Shown here piece after piece: positions 30,001 to 62,435 of a DNA stretch of 64,000 nucleotides. This DNA is from Ophelia neglecta. Taxonomy: Eukaryota. Within the stretch, counting starts at the first letter, position 1. Each line of letters starts with the position of its first letter. The stretch covers positions 73,718,001 to 73,782,000 of the forward strand of contig OZ260663.1 of NCBI GenBank assembly GCA_965285935.1, in the 5' to 3' direction. Under the pieces are notes generated by a model. The model had not been told where the DNA came from. It made no database searches and worked only from the letters and a program-made list of their open reading frames with translations. A program made the position numbers and the translations under genes.

Positions 30001-33000
30001 CTATCCGTAATAGCCGAAATGTGATATTATTTGTATTACTTTGTATACATGACTAAGCTATTCAGTAAAGGCGCCTTTTTATACGGGAACATTTCCTTTT
30101 ACAAAAAAAAGTGAAGCAATATTTGTTTATCTGTCCAGTGAACAACGCTAAATATGAAGTAAATGAGATTGTATTAAGCAGTTGTGATATTAAACTGTCA
30201 CTCTTATGGGGGTTGATCCGTGCGAGTCAACTGTGATTAAGAGACTTGAGCGATAAAATATATTTTTGTTTTCATGCTACATAATTCGTTTGTTTGGATA
30301 CTCTATTAGGTCAACTGGTTTAAATGGCCATATATATAGAACCAAAATTTGAACTGCAGTAAAATTAATGAACCACGAGAGACTTACATAAAAATTCATT
30401 TAGTTTGTAACATGTATCACTTCATTTAACACAAGTTCCAATTTCTGCAGGTGATTGAAAATACGTGTATCGCATACCTTACATTGTCAATTTTTGAACA
30501 ATGTTTTTGCTTTGACGATGGTAATGATGAGTACATCTAATTTCTACATGCTCGATTAGAAATCGAATGTTTTATAGAAAGCAGCCCATATAAGCAGATA
30601 GCTTTGCATGTTAGATTTTTATTTTATTTCAAATCAGCATTTGTAGTTTTGGAAAAATGCAAAGCAGTCTTACAAAAAGGACGGCTGCAGCGAGAGGGAA
30701 CAAGTAGGGTATATACTATTTTATCCATTTCATCTGACAATTAATGTTTTTTGCAGTCAATTTGTAGACATATTTGAATTTTTTATTTAATATTTTATAA
30801 AGAAAAATATTTTTTTGTGCAAAAAAGCCTGGGGTTGGGAAGTAGAAGAGTGGGTAACTGGTGGGTCCTATAGCTAACATATTCTACTTTCCAATTTCGA
30901 TCTTTGAAAAATGCACTTGGCAGTTCTATTAATCACAAAAAGTTATAACCCATGTTGGTTATATTCGGCAACAGAGAAGTTGATTGAATGTTTTAAATAA
31001 TTTTTTTTCCCACAAAAGATGGCATTAACTTTTACTGGGTTTTAAGTCCTAGAATCACAAATTTGCGTTGGCATGTCAAAGGAGCATGCATGTGATAAAA
31101 TGTTACAACTGTGTAGCCGAAACTGTTTCAAAATAGAAACGCATTGGAAAATTTTATGTGCTGTTTAACGTTTAATGAACTTCTGATCTTCTGCTAACAT
31201 GCTCATGGATGTTGTTTGATAGTCACTTTCTCGTAATATCAAACATTTATAGCCACAGTGATTACATAGACATTCAACAAAGACAGAGTATCTCCTTGAG
31301 CATCATGCGACACCTGCCTCTAAGAAAAGCCGTGGATTCTATATTCAATTTGTAAAAAATACAGTAACTATTATCACATAGACACCCTTCTTCTCGCAAC
31401 ACAGAACACTGTTATGGCTATTTCTAATTGCAAGAGTTGTAATTTTAAATTTGTTTTATTTATTTATTTACAAGCTTATTAACAGTTTTAAGGGAACCAA
31501 AAATTGGTGTTTACGTTCTTGCAGTTGAGGGATACCGATGATTTCCGACCGAATTGATGGAATTTTACAAATTAATGATTTTGCTTTTCCTGCCGGCTAT
31601 CCACTTCCAGGTTTGTCAATTAAGGAATCCGCGTGGTGAAACAGCTGAACACTTTATAGTGAAGCCCAAATGGCAATAATAGACCATATCATTTGTTCTA
31701 TATTAAGAACAATAATAAGCACAAACTGCCATGTTGCATGATAAAATGTTTGTACTACAAACTACAATTATACTGACAAACATTAGACAACCAAGCTATC
31801 TATATATATAACTATATACCTCCAAATAATTTTGTCCACAAGCTAGCATTTTTTTGCACACAAAGAAAGAGAGGAGCATGTGTGTACAATGATGAGGCAA
31901 TAACTGTGAGATCACACATGACAATGTGTTTTCTTTGATGTTTACGGGTCCTTACATTAGATGCAAAAGACCTTATGATGACTATGAAATTTAACTATAC
32001 TATGTAGTGCCCGGTTTCCTGGATTATATGGGACGGCCTAGGTGTCATTAATGTGTTCTATCAACCTTTCCAAAATTTTCAAGTGATATTATGATAATAT
32101 TAAAGACGATATGCAAAGAAGATACAATGTTTTCCATGCAAATTTACATGTATCTGGGTATCACGGGTATAAGGGGTAACGCTTGCTTAGGTACTTCAGC
32201 TGGTTGGCTCCACATTCAGCATCAATGTAAAAAAGGATAAGCTTAATTATATATTTTTTAAAGCTAAAATAAAAATATAGGACGTTCTAATGTGTTTTGA
32301 ATGTAGGATTAATAAATATAATGCCATATATTTGTGCAAAACACATGACCACCATGGCCAAGAATGTGGTATTTAAGTCGCCCATGTGTATTATATAAAA
32401 TACACTCCGTAACATAGTACTCGTCTTCGCGTCTGTGATTTGATCGTCTCGTGCAATATGTGAAAGCAGAGCACAAAGTGGGTCGTTCGAATGCCAAATT
32501 TCAAGGACACAGGGAAAAAAAGTCCACACGCCAGCTATGTGTTTTTGGGCAATATCTAGGAGGTCAATGTCACAAACTCCACAAAATGATTGGTGTATGA
32601 TATATTTTCTGAAGGCTAACCCATAATGTAATCCATCCCAACAGGTTTATGTTTATAAACAACATTGCTACAACATATACGAGAAGCTACTACTTACCTA
32701 GTGCTGCACATCCTAGCGTGTGAGCGGCTTCCACCTGTATGATTTCGTTCCTAGAATGGACCATGAGTGCCACGAGGAACTTGAGGCCCCGAGACTGTGC
32801 CAATGCGGCTTGATTACGAGCGTGCGGTACGTATCCCACGCCCACACTTAAACACCGCAGGGTCCTTATCACACTGAGAACGATGTATTCCTTGTCAGAC
32901 CTAAGCAGCCGTACAAGCGGGTGGACGCCGTTAGCCTGGGCAATCTGGTCTTGTTTGTTGAGGGGCCCCTGTGACAGTACACTCACAGCCTCCGAGCCGA

Positions 33001-36000
33001 TGAAATGCAGTTCTTCCGACATGGAGCTTAGGAATTCTATGAGAAGCTGAACTCCCATCATGCCTGCCATGGTTCTCCGTTCTTCCACGTCGTCGCCTGC
33101 AAGTGCCCACAAAGCCCCGGCTGTCTTCCGTTGAATTTCTGGCTGGCGAGAGCGCTTTAAAAGTTGCATTAGTGGCATCACTACGCCGTCTTCCAAGATA
33201 GCTTTCTGGCTATTTGGGTTGTTCTCTGCCAGTCGGTGTATGGCTTCCACGGCATTCATCTGCAGATCCTGGTTCTTCACTCTGATAAGTGTGATAACGT
33301 TGGCAGCAGCACCGTCCTGGATAAAGGCATTTTGGTTGGCCTCGTGCATGGAAGCCAGGCTGGACACTGCCCCCGTTAGGGCCATCAGCAACGGTCGGCT
33401 TGTACAATCCTCGAAATGCTGGACAATACTCTGTATGGCGCCCTGCTCTCGTCCGATCGCTGACTGATGGGTCTCATTTCCCCGGGAGATGTTGGCGAGT
33501 GCGTCCACGGCCTCCACCAGGACATCGGGCTCTCTCACTGCCTCAACCACCTTTACTAAGGCCGGGATGGCGCCATTCTGGGCACATACGTCCGCATATG
33601 TAGACATTGTCGCCATCTCCTTGATGGTCTTAGCAGCCAGCTGCACAAGGAAATTATTGTTAGATTTAAGCAAGCGAATAACAGCTGGAATTCCACCTGC
33701 AGATGAGAATTGTTCTCTCACTTCCTCCTTTGACACAATGTTGTGCAGACACTCGAATGTCGGTATTTTGGCCTGGTCAGCAGTCGATGTACTTTTGACC
33801 ACTTTAGCAATGGTCGGCACTATTCCATTGTCGTACGCTGGTTTCCAGTTAGGATTAACCCCTTCAGAACTGTCTTGTGTGAGTGTCCTTAGACATTTGG
33901 CCGCAGCCTCGGCCTCCTCGTCCGACTCGGACGCCAGAAATTTGATGAGATTTTTCCACACGGGTAAACGATCGTGATTTAACTCGATAAAGTATTCCAG
34001 TAACGATATGAATTGTTTGAAGGCACATAACTCGACAGCGCCATGGTTTTGGGTGTTTGTGGCCCACACTTTGGCACCTAGGTTGACAATACATTGGACG
34101 GTTTCGAGATTGCCACTCATGACTGATAATAGGAGAGGCGTGGAATGAAGATCGTCGCCCGTCTCCAATTCCAATTGATCCTCGCTCGCCTTAGCGAAAC
34201 GTTCCACCGATTTGACGAAACTGAAATAGCCCAAAAATTATTTTCATTTCACTAAGATTTATTCAACACAGCGGGATGAAAAACTGAAAGAACGTCGATG
34301 CTGTTCTTAACTCTCTATGGTTGAAGCAGGTGATAAGCTACCTGGTTATTTATGCAAGCATTTAATTACCTTTTTGCAAGGAGATTTGGAACTCCCATCT
34401 ATAGAGGGTATGCAGTTAAAGCCGAATACTGATACTACTTACCCCCTGAAGGCAGCATGGTGTATATGCGCCCAGCCGTTATCGTCCAGCTCATTCATGT
34501 CTTCGTCTGTGTAATCGTATTGGTCGGGGTCGAACTCCTTGACAGGTTTGTCTCGTCCCTGTCGACTTCCCCCAGGACCCTGCCGGATAACCTGCTGGTA
34601 TCTCTCCTGCCCGCGCCGCACCAACACAGCATCCGAAACTCTGAATAGGGAAAAGAAAAAAATAGAAGACTATAGCATCATTAGCATTTTGTGTAAGGAG
34701 TACTCTTGGTATTCTATTTCCGCTATATTCTAAAGGAAGGAAAATATCCGATGACAGGATATAGACGAAGTCTCCTACTCAACGCTGAGAGCTACAATGG
34801 AAACTCGGGAAAAACAGCACCCGCGTCTCGCAAATCATCTATTTCTATGATTTAGTACCAACAGCCAATATTCAGATGCCACCCAAGGGTGAAACGTAGA
34901 ATTTGAGAAACGATGATCACAAGCCTGCATCAATATGTTTAGCTCATGCATTTTGATCATCCGTGGCGTTGTAAATCCATAACGCAATTGCAAGAGAATA
35001 ACAGTACGTCGTGGCAAAAATGCAAGGCTGTTAATCGAATGTTTGCAACTTGGCACCTAAGAACAGCAACAAGCTGGCAAAAGTGCACTCTTAATAATGT
35101 TTCCAATGTGATCTTTGCGCTGATTTCCTTGTTTAATATTTGCTCTCTTGTGAAATCGTTGTTAAGGAGAGAGCTAGACAGCCAGACAAGTGGCTCAAAA
35201 TGGCAAAGTAACACCTGAAGAGGCACAAGACTCTCTTTTGTTATGGAGTTGTTATCAGTCATTAGCAATTCAGGTGAAGAGGCCTTCAAGCGTAAAGTAA
35301 AGATATACATGTATAGGGCGTCACAATATATTTGTGCAGCTCCTCTATCGTGAAAAGTTCAAGTGGACGGTTTAAAGTGTAAAAAAAACGTCCAATTTGC
35401 TATTATAAATTCGTCTGATAAATTATGATTAGGTTGGAAAAGGTAGAAACCAATGTAAGCTTGGTGTTTCGCATAAGAATAGCGACAATCGTTACTTGGT
35501 CGAGAATTAGAACCATGCACTGGACATATAATAGTCATTTTGCCATAGCGTTATTGAGGTTCTGTATATTATGATTTGCATAACAAATAGCAAAAAGTGG
35601 CTAACACTGATAGTGGTCAAGAATGTATATGGTAAATGTATTTCCCCGCGCATGTAAGACGTTGATTCGGTCCATTTATAATCAGGCTGATTTATTATTT
35701 GCTAATTTACTTGTACATTAATTGGTAGTCATCTATTCACCAGCACCATATAGGCCTAGGCATAATTCTTTAAACCTTGGGGCAATTAGATCTCGTATGC
35801 TACAGCTTTCGGCATTTATTATTTCACGTGAAACTTATGTCTTAGGACAAAATACCGGTCGATGCCAACACCCGATGTTTGTTTATCACAAAGGTATGGT
35901 ATCCGATAACAGTGCCCTAGTTTGCCTACATAAGTACATTTTCGTATTACTATCGCTACACTAATGGTATGCCTGACCTGGTTAATATGAATGCTTCAAA

Positions 36001-49599: not shown

Positions 49600-52500
49600 A
49601 TAATCAAGTTGTTACAGTTATTTACATATGATACCATTGTTCGTGCTACGGAGGTGCACCTCTCCAAGTCCTTTACGGTCACGAGGAAAGGCCAATAACA
49701 TTAGAACCATAAACCCCCTCACCTAGCATGGCGACGACGCCTCCTGCTAGCCACACGACTAGACTACCCCCAACAGTCCCCATCTCCAAGGCAACGCCTT
49801 TCGGTGAAATAAAAATACCGGATCCTTAGACAAAGAGAAAATGAAAAAAATTATAGTAAATATGTCTCCGATGTTATGTCTCCTGGTTTTTGGCCCAAGG
49901 GAGTCCGTTGTCGTGAGTGGACGTTCCGATCATAATCCGATTGCATTAAAAAAGAATAAAATGGAAGTATCATTACGGTTGTCATCCTATAACTGCCGGG
50001 GGGCGATGGCCTCCGCTGCTTATCTATTTCAACTCCTCGACACCTGCGACATACTTTGTCTGCAGGAGCATCACCTCAGTGTCAGTAACGCTCACTTTTT
50101 GAGTTCTCTTCATAGCGACTACAAGTCATACGTCCAGGTTGATTCAAGAATGATGACATTGAAACATGGCAGAGCAGGAGGTCTTGCAATACTTTGGCGC
50201 CGATCTCTGAACTATGCAGTATCTAAAATTGAAGGATTGTGCGACGATAGGATCATCGGTATTAGAATTCATCAACCGGAATCTGAGAGACAATTGTACA
50301 TTATTAACGCTTATCTGCCCAGTAGCAATCACGAAGAGAGCGAGTATAAAGAATACCTGTGTAAATTACAGAGTATAAATAGTTACTTTACGCAGGATGG
50401 AATCGTTGTCATAGCAGGGGATCTTAATGCCCAAATGGGCGAAGGAGCCGGACCTAGGGGTCAAGAGCCCACCACCAAAAGGGGGCAGTTATTACTTGAG
50501 TGTCTTCTTGATATGCAAATGACATCACTCGTTTGCCAGTCGCAATGTAGTGGCCCTTTACATACTTTCGTGCTGCACGGAGACAGCGGTGGGACTCAAA
50601 TAGACCATATCTGCGTCCCCACGGAACTGATAAATTGTACAACGGATTGCTCTGTGTCACAGCCCGTGGCAATCAACACTTCAGATCACCTCTCAGTATC
50701 CTGTCAGTTGGACTTAAATATACCGAGACATGACATCTTATCCAGAAATGTTTTAAACTGGAAAAAATGTGACAAAAGGCGATACTCTGATTTGCTCGCC
50801 GTGGAGTTGGCATCCTTTCCTATATCCGACACCAATACCGGTAACAAACAGTACATAGACTCCCTTGTGAGTTGGCTCACTAACTCTCTCACTAGGGCGG
50901 CAGACATGTCGGTTCCATCATCGAGTAAAACTCATTTCCAGAAACCATACTGGGACGACGAACTTGATCGGCTGCATAAAGATCAAGTATATAAGCGAGT
51001 TGTTTGGATTGCCCAAGACAAACCGAGGAGCAAGGAACACCTGTCGTACGCACAATATAAAAAGGCAAAAACAAAATTTCGTATTGCCCAGTATATGAAA
51101 GTCAAACAACGCTTGGAAAAAAGAACAGACAAATTTGCTATTGAAAACAATTTGGATGCTTTTTGGAGATACGTACGCAGTAAGAGGATAACTCAAGAGA
51201 GCTTTCACTTAATCAAGACTGACGATCAAACGTATGCTACTCCAGATGAGCTTAGAAACATGTGGGCCTCACACTTCAAAACTCTCTTGAATGAAGATCC
51301 TGCAGAAAGTGTGTTCTATGACAACGCTTTTGCGAAATCTGTCTATGACGAAGTGGATACCATAGCCGAAAATGACGCCGCATTATTCGACTCGGGAATA
51401 TTGGATTCGCCCATTACATGTCTTGAGGTGGATGAGGTGACAAGAAAACTGCCAAACGGAAAAACCGGTGGTTGGGATGGGATAACTTATGAACATTTAA
51501 AATACGGTGGTTCGCCCCTAAACAACTTTTTATCTCATTTGTATAATGAGCTCATAGCGAAAATATACATCCCGCGTTCTCTCAAACGGGGAGTGATAAT
51601 CCCCTTGTATAAAGGGAAGAAAAAGAGCAAATCTGACAGGGATTCCTATCGAGGTGTCACTTTGATGCCAGTAGTAAATAAAGTGTTTGAGAAGATAGTA
51701 GCTCGGCGCTTGGATCCTTGGCTGGAGGAGCACTGCTTCCCAGGTATACTCCAGCATTGCAAAAAACAGTCGAACAATGTCCTTCTGTCGTTTAGTGTAC
51801 AGGAGTGTATTAGACACTTCGTAGAAAGGTAAAGTAAAGTGTTCTCTGCTTTCCTGGATATAGAAAAAGCGTTCGACCGTGTATGGTGGGGCGCTCTTCT
51901 CCTTAAGCTACACAGGATGGGAATCCAGGGGCGTCTCTGGCACCTAATTCGGGAGTGGCTCAACGACTCATTTATGTGTGTTTTGATTAATGGATCATCA
52001 TCTGACAATTTTCAAATAAGTCGCAGCATTAAGCAGGGTGGCGTTCTGTCGACCCTGTACATGGCAATTGCATACCACGATTTCCATGAGTGTATGTCTG
52101 AGACAGGGGATGGGTTGCGTGTTAGGGGCGTCGACCTCAGCAGCCCCACTCTGGCAGACGACAGCGTGCTTCTCTCTCCGACCCAGTCCGGCCTACAAAG
52201 AATGCTGTCAGCTGCCGCAGATTATGCTCGGCGATGGAGGTTTAAGTTCTCAACTTCGAAAAGTAAGGTCGTTGTCTTCGGGGAATCGGGACGACAACAC
52301 ACGCAAAATTCGACTCGGAGAAAATGGTGCTTAAATAACTCACCTTTAGAAGAAGTTCCACGTATTACGCACGTTGGTGTTGAACTTGCGGCGGACCTAT
52401 CTTCTTCTCACAGGACGGGCAACATGTGTTCTAAAGGGCGACAACTCTTCGCTGGTCTCTCTGGTGTCGGAGTTATCGACTGCAGTCTAAACCCCATCAC

Positions 52501-53545
52501 ATCGGCCCGTCTGTGGACACAGGTATGTCTGCCGTCTATGCTGCATGCTGCCGAGTTGTGGAGTAATTTGACTATCACCGAATGTAAACAGCTCGAAGTC
52601 GTTCAAAGATACGCCGCAAAATGTTTGCAGGGATTTCCGATCAGAACTAGTACTGAAATCGCACTGTCATCGATTGGCTGGTCGTCAATGGAGGGTGTAA
52701 TAGACGCGAAGAAACTGGCGTTTCTACATAAGCTCTGTTCACTTGGTGATAACCATCTAGCCAGCATCATATTTCAGATGCGTGTTGACGATTTCTCTGT
52801 GAACAAGACTATTCAGACAGGATTTATACCAGATATAATGAAAATTCTTGATAAGTATGACTTGACTGATTATTGGACTATGTGTCAAGAAGAAATAGAT
52901 CCATTTCCTTCAAAGAGGGCGTGGAAAAATATAGTTAAAGACTGTGTTCAAGCGAAAGAATCGGAAATACGGACACAAACTGCTTTCGATAAACCAGGGT
53001 GCCAATATTTCTTTAGTATACATCCTGCTAACTCGGACAAGCCTCTGAACTTGTATGATGTGGCCAAGAGAAACTTCAGAATCAAAAATAATGTGATGAA
53101 TATAGTCTCATTGTTATCTCTCTATAATGAAAGCATAGTTGTATTTTGTGTTATGTGTCAAGATGAAGTCTCCGACCCTTTTGCTCATTTATTCTGTGAC
53201 GATGGTTGTAGTGTGCTTCGTGATGTTCGTATTGAGCTATGGGATGAACTGGCGAACATTCTGCATCCTACTGACTTTGTCAAAGTATACCAACTAGCCG
53301 ATGACATTAAATTAGTACCAGTGTTCCTGGGCAATGATCTCTTAGATTTGGGAGAACAGTCATACAACGCACTTGTCGTATCAGTGATCAATACCTTTGG
53401 ACAGCTAGCAAAGGGAATGTTTACCTACACATATTTATAATTGATTGATCATGTATATAGCTTATTTTATAACATGTTAATTTGTCCGAATTATTAACTT
53501 ATACCATGTAAGCTCTCATTAAGTTGGGGAAAATAAACCTATAAT
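49600..53545 (+). mobile_element. Non-LTR retrotransposon (LINE), 5'-truncated, near-complete ORF2; clade unresolved
   Basis: ORF2 region followed by a ~100-bp 3' UTR with AATAAA (53532) and a short (TAA)n-like tail. The 5' boundary is approximate; a possible TSD TAATATTT lies at 49591-49598 and 53545-53552. Confidence 0.9.
49961..53440 (+). pseudogene. LINE ORF2: APE endonuclease + reverse transcriptase + C-terminal CCHC knuckle, single premature TAA at 51830-51832
   Basis: APE motifs SYNCRG, LCLQEH, YLPS, IAGDLNA, QIDHI, SDHL. RT motifs YRGVTL, FLDIEKAFDRV, IKQGGVLS, LADD, THVGV. Knuckle CVMC...H...C. ORFs 49841-51832 and 51839-53440 share one frame. Confidence 0.92.
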
Positions 53546-54996: not shown

Positions 54997-55859
54997 ATTT
55001 TTCTGAGGTGAATGAACAAGATAACACCCGAACTGGGTTAAATATTTTATTAAATGAGATTATAATGATCATAATGTAATATGTACAATATTGGGTCTAT
55101 ACAAGGTTCAGAAACTATATCACTTACAATACAATGGTTAAAATGTCATGAACAAATGTTGACTAGCACATATTCTAAATTATAATAAACATATTTACAA
55201 TACCAAATATTAAAATACCACACATTACGTGTTACATGCTTAAAGTATGATTACCTTTAAAAGACATTATTTGGGGATGCCCCGTAGGGGACGCCGGGAT
55301 GGGTGGGTGGGAAAACTTGGAAACTCGTGTAGGCTTTAGCGAATATTTTAAAATGCGAGACACGTCCGATTGGTTTGGCTGGCGATTTAAAAAGGATGCT
55401 ACAGAGTGATTTGAACAATGCTGTGATTGGCCAATCTTTCCTTATCAGACATCCGGTGCGAGAGTATAAACATACTCTCGAACCGAAGGCAATTTAGCCG
55501 CTGGTGGCAGCACCATTCACCCACCCCAGAAAAAACCGGCTGCATGAATGCAACCGTCACATTTTTCTGAGGTGAATGAACAAGATAACACCCGAACTGG
55601 GTTAAATATTTTATTAAATGAGATTATAATGATCATAATGTAATATGTACAATATTGGGTCTATACAAGGTTCAGAAACTATATCACTTACAATACAATG
55701 GTTAAAATGTCATGAACAAATGTTGACTAGCACATATTCTAAATTATAATAAACATATTTACAATACCAAATATTAAAATACCACACATTACGTGTTACA
55801 TGCTTAAAGTATGATTACCTTTAAAAGACATTATTTGGGGATGCCCCGTAGGGGACGCC
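54997..55859. repeat. Ngaro B repeats, 299 bp x2 (54997-55295 and 55561-55859), flanking A2
   Basis: Direct repeat from ATTTTTCTGAGGTGAATGAAC to GTAGGGGACGCC; no differences noticed by eye. Confidence 0.95.
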
Positions 55860-56120
55860 AAGAAACGATTGTGACCTTGGTCACAAGTAGTTACATCCCA
55901 AAATAATAATGGACAGAGACGCTGGGTTCGGTAACAGTGTGCACTGATTACCGAGAGTGAGAGGGGGGGCAACAGCATGCGCTGATTGCCAAGGAAAAAA
56001 TGGTGGGGTGGGGGGGGGGGGGGTAACAGCGTGCGCTGATTACCGAAGGGTGAGCAACAGCATGCGCTGACTGCCAGGACAAGGTGGGCTGGGTGTGGAC
56101 AGTGTGCTAGCGGACGGGAG

Positions 56121-57015
56121 TCATTGTGGAAGTGTGAAATGTGATGGTCGTATGTATTTATGAAATGCAGAGCTCTTCCACCTGCCGGTGGCTTTAATGG
56201 TTGATTCGGAGGCCTGTTCAGAAGCAAGCTGTGTGGCCCTGCCGATACGAAAGGAATGGGTATTGTATTGGTGTGGGGATAGACCTGACATTGAGAGGGT
56301 AGTCTTCAGGAAGGCTGAAAAAGCCTCTCTTGTTAATGGTGAATGGCAAGACTTGATAAACAAAGGCCCTGGGGATTGACCACGCTTTGCGATATAAGTT
56401 GTCAACGCGTTGACCGGGCAGTAAAGAGGGCTTTTTTCGGTAATAGTTGGATGACAGGCCTATGTTATTACTGTGTTTGAATGAATTGAATGAGAGCAGG
56501 TAACCTCTCCCTTGCCTAGAAACCTGTGCCAGGGTTAATGTGTGCTGGGGGGTCGCAGAGAGGACGGCCTCGCCAGCCCGCAGGCAGGCATAGAAGGAAA
56601 GTAAAAACAAAGCCTTATACATAGTCCGATCATATGGGGATAAAGTACAGAATGGTATGGCATCTATAATTTTGAAGAGGACAGGCTTGTTTATTGGCAA
56701 CAGTTGTTTGTTGTCCTTGTCGGCCTGGGTCATACGTACTCCTTGAATGGCTTTGGTTATTATAAGGCTGTTCGTGTGATCAGGGAGGTGTTTAATTTTA
56801 TGCACAAAGGAGATGGCAGACATATATGTTTTGATGGACGTATGTTTCAAGCCTAGTTTTGATAAGTGTGCAATGAAGAGGGATAGGATGGTGGGGAGGA
56901 CAGGCAGGGTAGGCTTGCTTTTAAGGTTGTGGGAGATGAAGGACAGAAGCGTATTCCAATGTCGAACATACATTGCTCTTGTGCTAGGCGCAAGGGAGGC
57001 GGTGAGGAGTTTCAC
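56121..57015 (-). pseudogene. Ngaro tyrosine recombinase (frameshifted at ~56430-56465; no ATG at its 5' end)
   Basis: Catalytic residues R (LRAGE), K (SFKHS), H-x-x-R (HSFRIG), W (GRWKS) and Y (FHKYIR); CPV motif just after the frameshift. Confidence 0.92.
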
Positions 57016-58841
57016 AAGCTGAATTTGAAGTTCTGAGGTAGCAGGTGGTCCGGAACTGGAGTTGGGCAGGGCATCATCCCATAATGTCTCAAGAGGGCGG
57101 GCACCACCTGTTGACGGGAAATTTTATCACATAGGATATTACGTTCACCAGGTATGTGTACAGCAAACAGTGATATGTTGTGACTGAGAAGGGTCAGAAC
57201 AAGCGGGCGGAGAACAGCCATGATGGTTGGGCACCTAGAACTTTGTTTATTCAGGATATCAACGACTGCTTGATTGTCACAGTGGAATGTGACATGGGAG
57301 TGGGCAATTCTGTTTGCGAACATTGTGATTATGACAAAGATGGGGTAAAGCTCGAGGACTGCGATGTTAAGCTACTGCCAGTCACATGGCCAGGCGGCCT
57401 GGATCCAGGACGCCCCAAAGGTGGCGGCAAAGGCAGATTTTGATGCGTCTGAGCATAGGTGGAGGCGCTGGGAGCTGAGAAGTGGGGGCTGAGTGATGAG
57501 CGAAGTCCCGTTGTAAGCACTAAGAAAAGATAGCCACAAGTTCAAGTCAGCTTTAGCACCAACACTCAGTCGTTTAAAATAGAAAGGTTTTTGAAGGCCT
57601 ATTGTGAGGTCGTAAAGACGACGGAGGAAAGGTCGACCAGAAGGTACCACCACAGTAGCAAACTGGAGTTTGCCAATGAGTGACTGGAGCTCACGAAGGG
57701 TGAGTTTTTTATACTGGAGGGCAGACCTAATTTCCTCCGTGTAAGCTTCGAGTTTTGCTTTTGGGAGTTTGGCTGTCATCTCTACCGAGTCTAAGGCAAC
57801 TCCAAGAAACACAAGACAGGTGGTTGGCCCAACTGTTTTGTGCACTGCTAGCGGGACACCCAGTTGCTTGCATAAAGTTTTAAAATGTGCCAGAGCCAGT
57901 GCGCAGGACTGGCTGGTGGGGGCAACAAACAGGAAGTCGTCTAGAATCTTTACCACTCCCTGAATGCCATATTTATGTGTCAAAATCCATTTAAGTGCCG
58001 ATGAAAAAGATTCAAAAATTTTACAACTAGAGGCACAGCCCATGGGCAGGCACTTGTCAAAATAATACTTGTTGTCAAAAGTGAACCCTAGAAGGTGGTA
58101 CTGACTAGGTTTTACTGGGATGAGGCGGAAGGCATCCGCAATGTCGCTTTTGGCCAGGTATGCAGGGGGAGGGGAGGACTGGATAAGCTTGATGGCATGG
58201 TGAAGGGTTTCATATTGGACAGATGAGGATTCTTTTGGTATGTTGGAGTTTACTGCAGTGTCGTCATATGGGTATGACAAGTTGTGAAGGAGCCTAAATT
58301 TGCCTTGTTCTATTTTTTCACGCAATGCCAGGGGCGAAGATTTAAAATTATCGAAAGGGGGCGAATCAAAAGGCCCTGCTATGCGTCCTAAACTAATTTC
58401 TGCTTGTATTTTTTCCCTGGCTATCTGTGGTCGGAGGAGAATTGAGGTGGAGTTTTTTGATTGGAGAGGGGCGTCTAAACCAGAAAATTGGATGTCAAAA
58501 CCATTCATGAAGCCGTCAATGAGGAAACCGTCATGTTCATACCCTTTTAGGTGGTGGGCCAGAGCTTCGACCCTTATTGGTGTTGGGAGGGATTGCCGGG
58601 AGCTGCGCTGGGGGGTTTTGTTGGGGATTTTGGCTTGCCCTCTGTTGGTAACAGGGGGCATACATGGGGTGGCGTCTTCCACACCGCGGACAGGTATGTT
58701 TATACTGGCACGAGTCGCCAGATGAGCAGCGTGTTCCTCGTTGGTGAAAGCTAAAGCAGAAGCCTGGGGGTGGTTTGTTGGAGGGGGCATGTGAAAAGGG
58801 CTGACGGTTTGCCTCTGAGGCCTGTCCTGTGCGAAAGGCAC
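57012..58841 (-). pseudogene. Ngaro reverse transcriptase / RNase H (one in-frame TAG at 57372-57374)
   Basis: RT motifs KFRLLHNLSYP, LAKSDIADAFRLIP, LPMGCASS, KILDDFLF, FLGVALDS. RNase H motifs CSDAS, NIAVLELYPI, FHCDNQAVV, HIPGERNILCDKISR. The two ORFs are in the same frame. Confidence 0.93.
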
Positions 58842-59843
58842 GTAGCTCTAGATCCTGGTGCACCAGGAGCCAGGAGCACTTAGTGGTCTCCCGGTCACGT
58901 CTGAACTGTGTGTCATAGTAGCGCCAGTTAACGTTATGGCGCATGAGGTCTTTTATTTGGTGGCAATATGAAAGAAGGTCATTAATCTCCTGAGGATATT
59001 TATCAACATACACTGCCAGGAATATGTCCATGGCTGAGGCCCATTCTTGTTCGTTAAGGATTTTTTGCTTTTTGGGACTAACGCTAAAGTGGGGGTTGCT
59101 TTCGGGTTCAGCGAAACGAAGGGCATAAGCGGAGGACTGGTGGGGGTAGAGGAGATCGGCCAATTCAATATATTTGTGTTCCCATATTTTTTGCTTATTG
59201 ACAGGTCTATGTCTGCCCCGATGGGCATGCCGGCAGACCTGGTGGGTTGATGGCCTTCCACCAGTCTTGGAGTGGCTATAAACTCACCGGTACTGTTTAT
59301 GTCCAGTGGTGTGGGGCGGTCTAGTTCAGTAGGGGCATAGTGTTGGGCCTCAGGGGCCAAATCCTCCGAGTCTTTGGGTGGTGTGGTGAGACTGGGAACA
59401 GCGTGCGCTGATTCCCTGAAAACACCGCCATCATCCCCTGCCCTTTGGAGTTGGTTAGTAGCCTGAGGTCTTTGTGTGAATGCTGTCATTGCCCCCACGA
59501 GATTCTGCATTTGAAGAGTGAATGCCGTTTGCTGCGAAGCCATCTCCTGCTGTAGGGACAGCATTGCCTGCATGGTAGTGTTCAATGCTGCTGATTGTGA
59601 GTCGGCATGCACCGCTGTTGACCGTTTTGTGGCTGTTTGGGCGGCCCGAGGCTGTCTTGACCTGGCTGGCCTAGGTGCTGCCTGATTTTTTTGCCCAAGG
59701 CCCAGTCTTGTTGGAGGGTTCCGGGGCCTGCCTGGCTGTTTACGGGTTGGGATCCTGCTAAGGGCAGGTGCTGTGGTCGTAGCAGTTGGCCTGGTCTGAC
59801 GGGAAACCGGCACCGGGATGCGGCTTTGTCTTTCCTACGGCAT
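58537..59843 (-). pseudogene. Ngaro gag/ORF1 (disrupted: TAG at codon 3 and a 1-nt frameshift near 59190)
   Basis: ATG at 59843 is in frame with ORF 58953-59813. A shift in the A-run at ~59187-59197 restores KIWEHKYIELADLL and joins ORF 58537-59163 (WRYYDTQFRR, C-terminal Cys/His finger CFSFH...C...C..KHTCPRCGRRH), motifs typical of DIRS/Ngaro gag. Confidence 0.85.
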
Positions 59844-60430
59844 GTTTGTGGAGCTGTAACAGAGAGGGAAGAGCAGCAGCAGATATGTAGTAGTTGTGAA
59901 TACATTGTCAAAACAGGGCGGTTGTAACCGCCAAGCAAGTGTAACAGTAGTAGAATGTACTTTAAAGCTGGATGCCCAGTATGTGGGACTAGCAAATGTA
60001 TGCTGCGATAAGATGTTAAGCATGACAAGGAGAATTAAAAAATGTATATATATATATAATCAAGTATAGCTGTAAGAAGACGATATCGTCTTGGCATTAC
60101 AATTGAGGTTCAACAAGATGTTATAATGTTATCACGGTGGTTGGAGAGGCCGCACCTGTGCAATAGCCCACAGGGTGGGGGGTGGGGGGGTAATAGTGAA
60201 GATGTGAATGCAATGTTGGTCGAATGGACCGTAGTTTAAGAGCAAAGACAGCCGAATGGACTGATGGTCAGTTTTTATATGGGATGTTAACAAGCATAAT
60301 AATAAAGTTTAATTTAAGGAAGAAATATGTAAAAAAAAAAAATCAATTACTTTGTATTTGACTGGGTAAGCAGGGGAAAAGAAATGGGGGGGGGGGGGTC
60401 TTCCGTGCAGGACGCGTTGTCACTGCACAC

Positions 60431-61060
60431 CTAGCTGCGGGCCCCTTTCTTGGTCGCTTCCAGTGCCTTGAATACTGCTTTGCGCATGGAATTCTTGTAT
60501 AATTTCCGCCCGAGCGGTGAATTCGGATGAATTCCATCGCGTGACCATTCCTGCACTTGTGGAGTCCAGAAGCCTTTATGAACCCAATAAGTAATGCGGG
60601 GTTCTACATCGCACAAGTTGATCAAGAGGCGGTTGCACTCGTGGGCTGCCACCCCAAAAGCCTCGGGTGTAAGTAGACCTATGCCAGAGGTCCTAGGGAG
60701 CACCGAGCACACAAAAACTGTTTTAACATGGTATTCGTTGATGAGGAGCGTAGCCATATCAACAATTTTTTCCGCCACTTGCAGCGGGTGCGAGCCGGCC
60801 GCCAGGTCATTAGTGCCGATGTCGAGAATGACCAAATCAGGCCGGTATTTTTCAAGATGGCGGCTCGGAAGTTTGTATTTAGGATCTAGTATAGCTGCTC
60901 CACGGGCACCGACCAGATACAGGTCTTTAAGGAGGCAGCTGAGGCGAAGGTGTCGTGCAAAGGACTGGTCCTGGAGGCCTGTGGCGGCCGAAGAGCTGGC
61001 GAGGTGATGCTGAAGGCCGGACACAAAGCTGTGACCTATAAACATGGCCACCGGCGCCAT
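60431..61060 (-). CDS. SGNH/GDSL-type hydrolase (esterase) of the Ngaro element, intact 209 aa
   Basis: All four SGNH blocks present: I FIGHSFV (nucleophile Ser), II GARG, III LDIGTNDL, V RDGIHP (Asp-x-x-His). ATG to TAG uninterrupted. Confidence 0.88.
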   Translation of the reverse strand: MAPVAMFIGHSFVSGLQHHLASSSAATGLQDQSFARHLRLSCLLKDLYLVGARGAAILDPKYKLPSRHLEKYRPDLVILDIGTNDLAAGSHPLQVAEKIVDMATLLINEYHVKTVFVCSVLPRTSGIGLLTPEAFGVAAHECNRLLINLCDVEPRITYWVHKGFWTPQVQEWSRDGIHPNSPLGRKLYKNSMRKAVFKALEATKKGARS

Positions 61061-61190
61061 AATTTAAATGCACGTACCTGCTTCGTAAATAGCGAAGATG
61101 TCCAATTACTTTGTCCGTGCGGGAGTTTCCGTCCAGTGGTCTGGGAATGAAGCTGTGATGAGCGATCTTTGCTGCAAACTAGCAGGGAGA

Positions 61191-61439
61191 AAAACTTGGA
61201 ATATCGTGTAGGCTTTAGCGAATATTTTAAAATGCGAGACACGTCCGATTGGTTTGGCTGGCGATTTAAAAAGGATGCTACAGAGTGATTTGAACAATGC
61301 TGTGATTGGCCAATCTTCCCTTATCAGACATCCGGTGCGAGAGTATAAACATACTCTCGAACCGAAGGCAATTTAGCCGCTGGTGGCAGCACCATTCACC
61401 CACCCCAGAAAAAACCGGCTGCATGAATGCAACCGTCAC
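61191..61439. repeat. Ngaro A1 repeat, 249 bp (second copy A2 at 55312-55560)
   Basis: Direct repeat at constant offset 5879 with three mismatches seen; contains CCAAT/ATTGG boxes and a 9-bp-stem palindrome. Confidence 0.95.
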
Positions 61440-62435
61440 ATATGTACAGACCTGTCGCTATATACTTTTTTATATTTGTAAGAATACTGTTTCTAGGTCT
61501 GACTAACATTATGCACAACTTTGTACTTCATCGCCAGTGGCGGAATTTGTAATATTTCGTTCTTGATTAGCAGATATTGAAGGTCTTTTAATATATAAAA
61601 TGACCATTGTGTTCCCCGTTTATGGTCCCTGGAGAATTTACATAGTTTTACATGCTAACTATAGATGCATTGGCGGACAGAATCTGCTTAGGACATATAT
61701 CTACTGCAGGAAACCCAATTGATATGACATATTCAAGCTGATATTTGCTAATTACCTATAATAGTTCCAACAATAAAAGACACACCACCGAAAAGACCGA
61801 TTTGCCTTTTGTACCGCAGTCTATCTACCTCTCCTTGCCCTATTGGTGTTTGCGGTTCCTCCTGTGATGAGATCGACTGCCGATTGCGTACTTCACCTAG
61901 TCAAAGATTGAAGCAAGATAACTAGGACTATATTGCCATCCACGAGAACAATTCTGCCTCTTGGATGTACACTTGTCTAAGAGGGAAGTACAATTTATAT
62001 GATATGCATTGTTATTTTTCTTTTCAATGTGCCTGTAAATATTAACACTTAAATGAAGAATGATAACAACTCACCATTCGAAGTCATTTTAGAAATCAAT
62101 TTCGTGTCTTTCCTATAGGCAAACCGATAACCCTGATGTACAGGGAATGGAGAACAAGTATCGCAATACAATTAAATATGTATATTCTGACAAAAAACCT
62201 ACGCAATATACAGACGAGCCAACAGTCATTTATAATGGGATACTTTGAATCCAACTGTTAGTAATCAGTTTATAAAAGAACCATGCATCGTATCTTCAGG
62301 TAAGATAGCTTAATCCTATAAAATCTGCCTTATCACTGATTGTGGACACAACTGTCTCCTTTTCTGATTTTAAAGGGACGTTAAGTATGAACATATATAT
62401 GTCAAATATAATACCAATTCTTCAGGACCAATTAT

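Follow-up and report, generated by a model that had tools for sequence, protein, structure and literature searches.

An SGNH hydrolase ahead of gag in a Ngaro retrotransposon of Ophelia neglecta: a conserved acceptor motif and a plausible leader-intron switch

The DNA analysed here is a 64,000-nucleotide (nt) stretch of the Ophelia neglecta genome (GenBank assembly GCA_965285935.1, contig OZ260663.1, positions 73,718,001 to 73,782,000 of the forward strand), referred to below as the window. Its minus strand carries, from 61441 to 54997, a single retrotransposon of 6445 bp that is bounded by split direct repeats and belongs to Ngaro, among the tyrosine recombinase (YR) retrotransposons of the order DIRS. 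An SGNH hydrolase gene was found to stand first in this element, ahead of the gag-like gene, and to lie wholly within a predicted leader intron. The presence of a splice acceptor directly ahead of gag is well supported by sequence comparison, whereas the conservation of a donor ahead of, rather than after, the hydrolase is marginal. That splicing decides between hydrolase and Gag output, with the retrotransposon family working as a leader-intron switch, is plausible and partly supported by comparison with relatives, and we judge its chances to be about even.

The repeats occur in the order A1-[open reading frames (ORFs)]-B1-A2-B2 that is expected of Ngaro, the A copies being 99% and the B copies 100% identical. 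Between and around them the element reads A1, SGNH hydrolase, a 576-nt spacer, the gag-like gene, reverse transcriptase/RNase H (RT/RH), YR, and B1-A2-B2. A preliminary description of this DNA had placed the hydrolase first in a Ngaro element, and the gene (61060..60431) does lie inside the split repeats, between A1 and gag. The same description had put the known hydrolase ORF of some Ngaro elements downstream of YR. PMC9210276 agrees, documenting the hydrolase ORF after YR; the window does not match that layout, and the order found here is not the norm that the accessible literature gives.

Comparison with related elements, designated by L numbers, showed that in every homologue with readable context the hydrolase precedes gag or RT. 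Five elements with the order A1-hydrolase were resolved together with their split repeats (the window, L001, L006, L007, and L014). L001 consists of A1, hydrolase, arrays, gag, RT, YR, and B1-A2-B2, an order shared by L007 and L014, while L006 reads A1, hydrolase, RT, and YR and is without gag. The partial contigs L002, L005, L008, and L015, the last being a Ngaro relative from the annelid Lamellibrachia satsuma (GCA_022478865.1, contig JAHXPS010000247.1), agree in placing the hydrolase ahead of gag. Because this layout is common to diverged relatives, the hydrolase is not a secondary insertion peculiar to this copy, a possibility that the preliminary description had raised. Three hydrolase-bearing Ngaro contigs of one family from marine metagenomes (L016-L018) close on themselves through terminal overlaps, with a unit of 7243 for L016 and of 6215 for L017 and L018; their linear order is indeterminable, and the contigs may represent collapsed repeats, tandem copies, or circular forms of the DNA. 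The hydrolase is missing from L009 and L010-L013, the closest relatives by RT.

The hydrolase is the only gene of this copy that is intact, with no stop and no frameshift. Its product matched PF13472 (Lipase_GDSL_2) with 38.4 bits against a cut-off of 32.9 (E = 2.4e-9) and PF00657 (Lipase_GDSL) with 29.6 bits against 23.6, and contains the motifs G-H-S-F, G-x-N-D, and D-G-x-H. Alignment of 19 homologues (27-47% identity) showed that G-x-N-D (block III) is invariant, as are the Asp-Gly of the D-G-x-H block and a K-G-F motif particular to this hydrolase family; the His of D-G-x-H was present in at least 90% of the sequences, and the Ser block was found in every homologue reaching the N-terminus, being missing from two N-terminally short sequences. 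Structure prediction, which the preliminary description had proposed as a check, gave a confident SGNH fold. The AlphaFold model (predicted local distance difference test score, pLDDT, 88.7) has a three-layer alpha/beta/alpha architecture, and the best Foldseek matches were the catalytic subunits of PAF-AH Ib (template modelling score, TM, 0.71; probability 1.0), with Bacteroides acylhydrolases or sialate O-acetylesterases as further structural matches. A profile search of PDB sequences retrieved the ORF1 esterase of ZfL2-1, a long interspersed nuclear element (LINE), under entry 4c1b (E = 9e-6). The protein is predicted to be a catalytically competent esterase of the PAF-AH/LINE-ORF1-esterase type, which would act on the element's behalf, probably on a lipid or O-acetyl ester. 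Searched against 1.84 billion representative proteins, the hydrolase profile yielded 169 clusters with E <= 1e-30 and 1985 with E <= 1e-10, almost without exception stand-alone proteins of about 200 amino acids (aa). One predicted protein of 2341 aa from a 7.9-kb contig (P0145) contains six stretches that match the profile, and might reflect tandem copies modelled as a single read-through protein. An exact search for the window hydrolase found no record.

Splice sites were scored with our own approximate metazoan weight matrices. The predicted acceptor ends in TTACAG, with its G at 59854, 10 nt ahead of the gag ATG at 59843 (context ACAAAC-ATG), just where the preliminary description had put it, and no ATG occurs from the acceptor to the gag ATG. 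Among the AGs of the element it ranks within the top 1% by score, and the AG-free zone before it measures 106 nt, which places it among the longest 0.3% of inter-AG gaps (P = 0.003); AG-exclusion zones taken over the elements together gave P = 0.002. A pyrimidine-rich tract that ends in a CAG 0-10 nt ahead of the gag ATG was found in all ten elements compared (the window, L001, L002, L005, L007, L008, L010, L014, L015, and L016; Fisher P = 5e-8). Each site was tested against all ATGs of its own locus, of which a fraction of 0.11-0.20 had a nearby CAG, and the hydrolase ATGs, used as a control, gave P = 0.9. The nucleotide sequences of these ten elements are not alignable. An NCBI gene model in L015, KAI0242052.1, has a second exon that begins at the equivalent site. 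This model (432 aa; L015 273-4457) fuses the hydrolase with parts of the element that lie downstream in different reading frames and represents a retrotransposon modelled as a host gene.

The interval between the two predicted splice sites, the 1224-nt length and both distances of which are as the preliminary description had claimed, is preceded by a leader that is free of start codons and contains a spacer that is rich in them. No ATG occurs in the 270 nt ahead of the window hydrolase ATG, where 3.9 are expected from shuffles (P = 0.011), and in five of six elements so tested the leader lacks any ATG over the 190-326 nt before the hydrolase ATG. Since the spacers hold 4-34 ATGs across elements, ribosome scanning to gag would be blocked on unspliced RNA. 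Tandem arrays of short hairpin-forming units (periods of 30-220 nt) take up the spacer or the predicted intron of seven of ten related elements. No tandem repeats were found in the window spacer, unlike in most relatives, and its RNA fold z-score is a modest -2.58. An ATTAAA at 60308-60313 on the minus strand, within the predicted intron and 118 nt past the hydrolase stop, could terminate a short hydrolase mRNA.

Several of these spacer features would also suit expression of gag without any splicing, either from an RNA whose own promoter lies within the spacer or by internal ribosome entry, with the pyrimidine tract serving as a Yn-Xm-AUG entry motif and the arrays of the relatives as promoter or enhancer elements. 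The TA run about 200 nt ahead of gag, the ATTAAA as the end of a short mRNA, the arrays of the seven relatives, and the fold score of the window spacer would all be in keeping with it. An entry motif needs no invariant CAG, yet CAG ends the tract in ten of ten elements, with AG-free zones upstream, and an independent gene predictor took the equivalent site of KAI0242052.1 as an acceptor. We consider expression of gag without splicing unlikely.

For a switch between hydrolase and Gag, the donor would have to lie ahead of the hydrolase. The window candidate, CAG/GTACGT (the slash marks the splice border), is found 17 nt ahead of the hydrolase ATG at 61060. It is the best-scoring GT from A1 to the acceptor and ranks within the top 0.6% for the element as a whole, and no good donor was found within the window hydrolase ORF by matrix scoring. 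Candidate donors ahead of the hydrolase were located in several relatives at varying distances (Table 1); the donor of L015, which overlaps the hydrolase ATG, is the only GT from the locus start to the acceptor to score above 0.9.

A shorter intron would keep the same acceptor and place the donor after the hydrolase, at 60430 or 60155 in the window. The hydrolase would then stay in exon 1, splicing would strip the ATG-rich spacer only, and gag would be translated by reinitiation from a bicistronic hydrolase-gag RNA. Candidate donors for such an intron occur in the window as TAG/GTGTGC at the hydrolase stop and CAG/GTGCGG in the spacer, in L001 as TAG/GTAATT 40 nt past the stop, and in L006 as TCA/GTGAGT 4 nt past the stop, and the best donor lies within the spacer in L001 and L002. 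Over the elements, however, donors within 60 nt past the hydrolase stop were not enriched (P = 0.27), and a donor just past the stop was rejected as a conserved feature. The spacers of L015 and L005 are without a usable donor. Reinitiation after an ORF of 630 nt, the length of the hydrolase ORF, is inefficient in eukaryotic translation. The shorter intron is rather improbable in our estimation.

The predicted leader intron seems to be a trait of the group rather than a device built around the hydrolase, because the hydrolase-free L010 keeps a predicted one: its leader of about 1 kb contains tandem repeats and a TTG/GTAAGT donor, and its best acceptor lies 3 nt ahead of gag.

Under the proposed leader-intron switch, transcription would start in A1, which presumably holds the promoter. 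On the unspliced RNA the hydrolase AUG would come first, making this RNA the hydrolase mRNA; as the sole RNA carrying the whole element, it would also be the likely template for copying. Splicing from the donor at 61077 to the acceptor at 59854, if these sites are used, would remove the hydrolase together with the ATG-laden spacer and leave the gag AUG first, giving an mRNA for Gag and for the downstream RT and YR frames. The Gag, RT, and YR proteins would then act in trans on the unspliced RNA. The preliminary description had predicted an intact esterase from unspliced RNA and Gag from spliced RNA. The esterase frame does come first and is intact, and removal of the interval does put the gag ATG first; a whole Gag is not encoded by this copy, in which gag has one stop and one frameshift. 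Some feature of the intron may mark the unspliced RNA, and the hairpin-unit arrays of seven of ten relatives, absent from the window, are candidates. Extended to the animal Ngaro group, the proposal becomes a leader-intron switch in which hairpin arrays mark unspliced RNA for export or as template, in a retrovirus-like manner that arose independently and with the roles of accessory gene and Gag reversed. We offer this wider reading tentatively, at clearly less than even chances. We know of no export or packaging signal for these Ngaro elements.

Several observations weigh against the switch. The matrices used for scoring are heuristic and stand in for a trained predictor, and the splice sites and their junction are predictions from sequence; when transcript contigs were sought with the gag of L005, the query itself was the only match. 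The conservation of the donor across relatives is marginal, with two tests each giving P of about 0.04. In favour of the switch, the best donor lay within the short leader in four of nine elements (P = 0.04); it lay elsewhere in L002, L005, L007, and L016, and no good donor was found ahead of the hydrolase in L001 and L007. Of the survey of flanking splice sites that the preliminary description had suggested, the acceptor half came out as conserved and the donor half did not go beyond this marginal result. In the window itself, the donor in the leader competes with alternatives at 60430, the hydrolase stop, and at 60155, within the spacer, although these are weaker. The family of the window element is absent from the searched collections, in which the closest match was 48% identical for the hydrolase and 60% for RT, and no sister copies or host transcripts were found there. 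The gag, RT/RH, and YR genes of this copy are unable to yield whole products as they stand. Finally, the hydrolase block that distinguishes L006 from L009 is without GT...AG borders, and no acceptor lies ahead of gag in this pair.

L006 (8542-13665) and L009 (5199-10465) come from one assembly and are 97.5% identical over 3975 nt, comprising RT, YR, and the repeats. L006 has the hydrolase and lacks most of gag, whereas L009 has gag and no hydrolase, and the two may form a complementing pair. That L009 might derive from an L006-type element through splicing and processing was considered and rejected, since the block is not bordered by GT...AG and most of gag is also missing from L006.

In the window copy, RT/RH aligned with its intact relatives at about 52% identity in a single frame with one stop (tblastn), and the YR match to relatives was spread over two frames (tblastn); RT/RH and YR together are 47-52% identical to intact relatives. 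The C-terminal half of the gag-like product has homologues in the gag of L005, L008, and L010 (37-40% identity, tblastn), and no Pfam family was found for the gag-like ORF. Some of the breaks may be assembly errors. Since the repeats are 99-100% identical, the data point to a recent insertion, of a copy that was already defective.

These defects bear on the view that the copy is dead, its splice motifs being relics or coincidental and its hydrolase a passenger that has no role for the element. The broken state of gag, RT/RH, and YR fits that view, as does the varying presence of the hydrolase within one family, that of L006 and L009, and its absence from close RT relatives. It is opposed by the catalytic residues, which are kept in all but one or two of the 19 homologues, by the number of clusters that the hydrolase profile finds at E <= 1e-30 (169), by a layout and an acceptor that are kept across elements sharing no alignable DNA, and by the recent insertion to which the repeat identity points. 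The motifs are very improbable as relics in our judgement.

Table 1. Features of the Ngaro element in the window, and donors and tandem arrays of related elements
Feature	Element	Positions	Strand	Remarks
Repeat A1, 5' end	window	61191..61441	-	251 nt; 99% identical to A2
Leader, A1 to predicted donor	window	61078..61190	-	no ATG; with part of A1, predicted exon 1
Predicted 5' splice site	window	61072..61080	-	CAG/GTACGT; G of GT at 61077
Predicted leader intron	window	59854..61077	-	1224 nt; GT...AG borders; encloses hydrolase ORF and spacer
SGNH/GDSL hydrolase ORF, intact	window	60431..61060	-	209 aa; start context AnnATGG
Spacer, hydrolase to acceptor	window	59855..60430	-	576 nt; 4 ATGs, homopolymer runs, TA run, ATTAAA
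Predicted 3' splice site	window	59854..59881	-	pyrimidine tract 80% Y; ends TTACAG; G at 59854
gag-like gene, broken	window	58537..59843	-	one in-frame stop and one frameshift; from ORF table
RT/RNase H gene, broken	window	57012..58841	-	one in-frame stop; Pfam RVT_1 1.2e-9
Tyrosine recombinase gene, broken	window	56121..57015	-	one frameshift; Pfam Phage_integrase 4e-7
Repeat B1	window	55561..55859	-	299 nt; 100% identical to B2; AATAAA inside
Repeat A2	window	55312..55562	-	partner of A1; 99% identity
Repeat B2, 3' end	window	54997..55295	-	299 nt; AATAAA inside
Donor	window			17 nt ahead of hydrolase ATG
Donor	L008			24 nt ahead of hydrolase ATG
Donor	L002			33 nt ahead of hydrolase ATG
Donor	L005			57 nt ahead of hydrolase ATG
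Donor	L014			135 nt ahead of hydrolase ATG
Donor	L016			186 nt ahead of hydrolase ATG
Donor	L015			overlaps hydrolase ATG
Array	L001	9934-10814		
Array	L002	2662-3074		
Array	L007	9670-10254		
Array	L010	5535-5888		
Array	L014	10049-10422		
Array	L015	1261-1729		
Array	L016	244-859		

An acceptor-like CAACAG/GT was observed at about 57108 on the minus strand, 93 nt ahead of the YR start of the window element, and similar sites lie 30-114 nt ahead of the YR start in four elements (the window, L001, L006, and L010). At this site the sequence also encodes the conserved motif I-S-R-Q/K-Q-V of RNase H. Because coding constraint on RNase H explains it, this motif neither supports nor excludes a second intron. 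The three-tier programme of unspliced, singly spliced, and doubly spliced RNAs that the preliminary description had built on such an intron thereby gains no proof from the motif. Between YR and B1, at 55962-56098, the window contains three units of about 52 nt with G runs (repeat family D3). No Pfam match to a methyltransferase domain, a DIRS1-like trait, was found in any scanned ORF, and no Rfam family was matched in the window. A self-BLAST of the window revealed no further copy of the Ngaro element. A LINE-type element with two adjoining long ORFs, containing AP-endonuclease and RT domains, occupies 49841-53440 on the plus strand, some 1.5 kb away from the Ngaro 3' end. An intronless ORF of 514 aa with armadillo repeats (Pfam Arm 3.4e-26) at 32690-34234 on the minus strand is probably a host gene or retrogene.

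Among described systems, the Xenopus elements DIRS-53_XT and DIRS-54_XT carry an SGNH ORF after YR, according to PMC9210276, which summarises Goodwin and Poulter 2004. As described there, they resemble the window element in having split direct repeats, a gag-like ORF, RT/RH, YR, and a stand-alone SGNH ORF of unproven function. They differ in that their hydrolase lies between YR and B1, whereas in the window and its relatives it lies between A1 and gag. They differ also in the long spacer, usually arrayed, and the splice-acceptor motif that stand ahead of gag here; no intron is described for them in the accessible literature. An esterase domain (PDB 4c1b) is also contained in the ORF1 protein of ZfL2-1, a LINE of the CR1/L2 group (PMC3905857). 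That protein shares with the window hydrolase its PAF-AH Ib-like SGNH fold, its retroelement origin, and its position upstream of RT. The ZfL2-1 esterase is one domain of a multi-domain ORF1 in a non-long terminal repeat (LTR) element, whereas the window encodes a separate protein of 209 aa in a YR element that has gag; in L006, by contrast, the hydrolase does occupy the place of gag.

Retroviruses and pararetroviruses use a donor in the leader and an acceptor just ahead of a downstream gene, and their unspliced RNA is the full-length template. The proposed switch would be analogous in drawing on one primary transcript, a leader donor, and an acceptor a few nt ahead of the ATG to be expressed. 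Its polarity would be reversed, with the accessory enzyme coming from unspliced and Gag/RT from spliced RNA. Penelope-like elements and the Ogre elements of plants bear introns. They resemble the proposal, as do LTR elements, in keeping a functional intron through replication, and the bdelloid Vesta and Athena elements have likewise captured GDSL-type ORFs. Spliced ORF3 messages of LTR elements are described in PMC5408684. All of these belong to other orders of element; the GDSL ORF3 in them follows pol, and for none of them is there a report of an accessory ORF inside a leader intron. For the LAP2alpha exons of TMPO and ZNF451, which derive from a DIRS gag, it was inferred that a splice acceptor and a poly(A) signal had arrived with the gag sequence itself (PMC4495291). 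That inference is consistent with an acceptor directly ahead of gag in YR elements, although it concerns a domesticated mammalian gag of DIRS1-like type, was drawn from the structure of the host genes, and has no hydrolase associated with it.

Ngaro elements, an SGNH ORF borne by Ngaro, and retroelements that splice are already known. As far as the accessible literature shows, what is new is the 5' position of the hydrolase over a wide group, the conserved splice acceptor directly ahead of gag, and the nesting of an accessory gene in a predicted leader intron. To our knowledge, the YR retrotransposons are the least understood order of retroelements. The conserved acceptor ahead of gag provides a concrete hypothesis for how their several ORFs are expressed, testable by RNA data. 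If the switch operates, Gag, RT, and YR should work in trans on the unspliced RNA, and the misannotation of such elements as host genes by gene predictors, as with KAI0242052.1, would be explained. It would also tie the esterase that recurs in several types of transposable element (Ngaro, CR1/L2 LINEs, bdelloid LTR elements, and the Helitron-linked texim genes of fish) to one RNA species.

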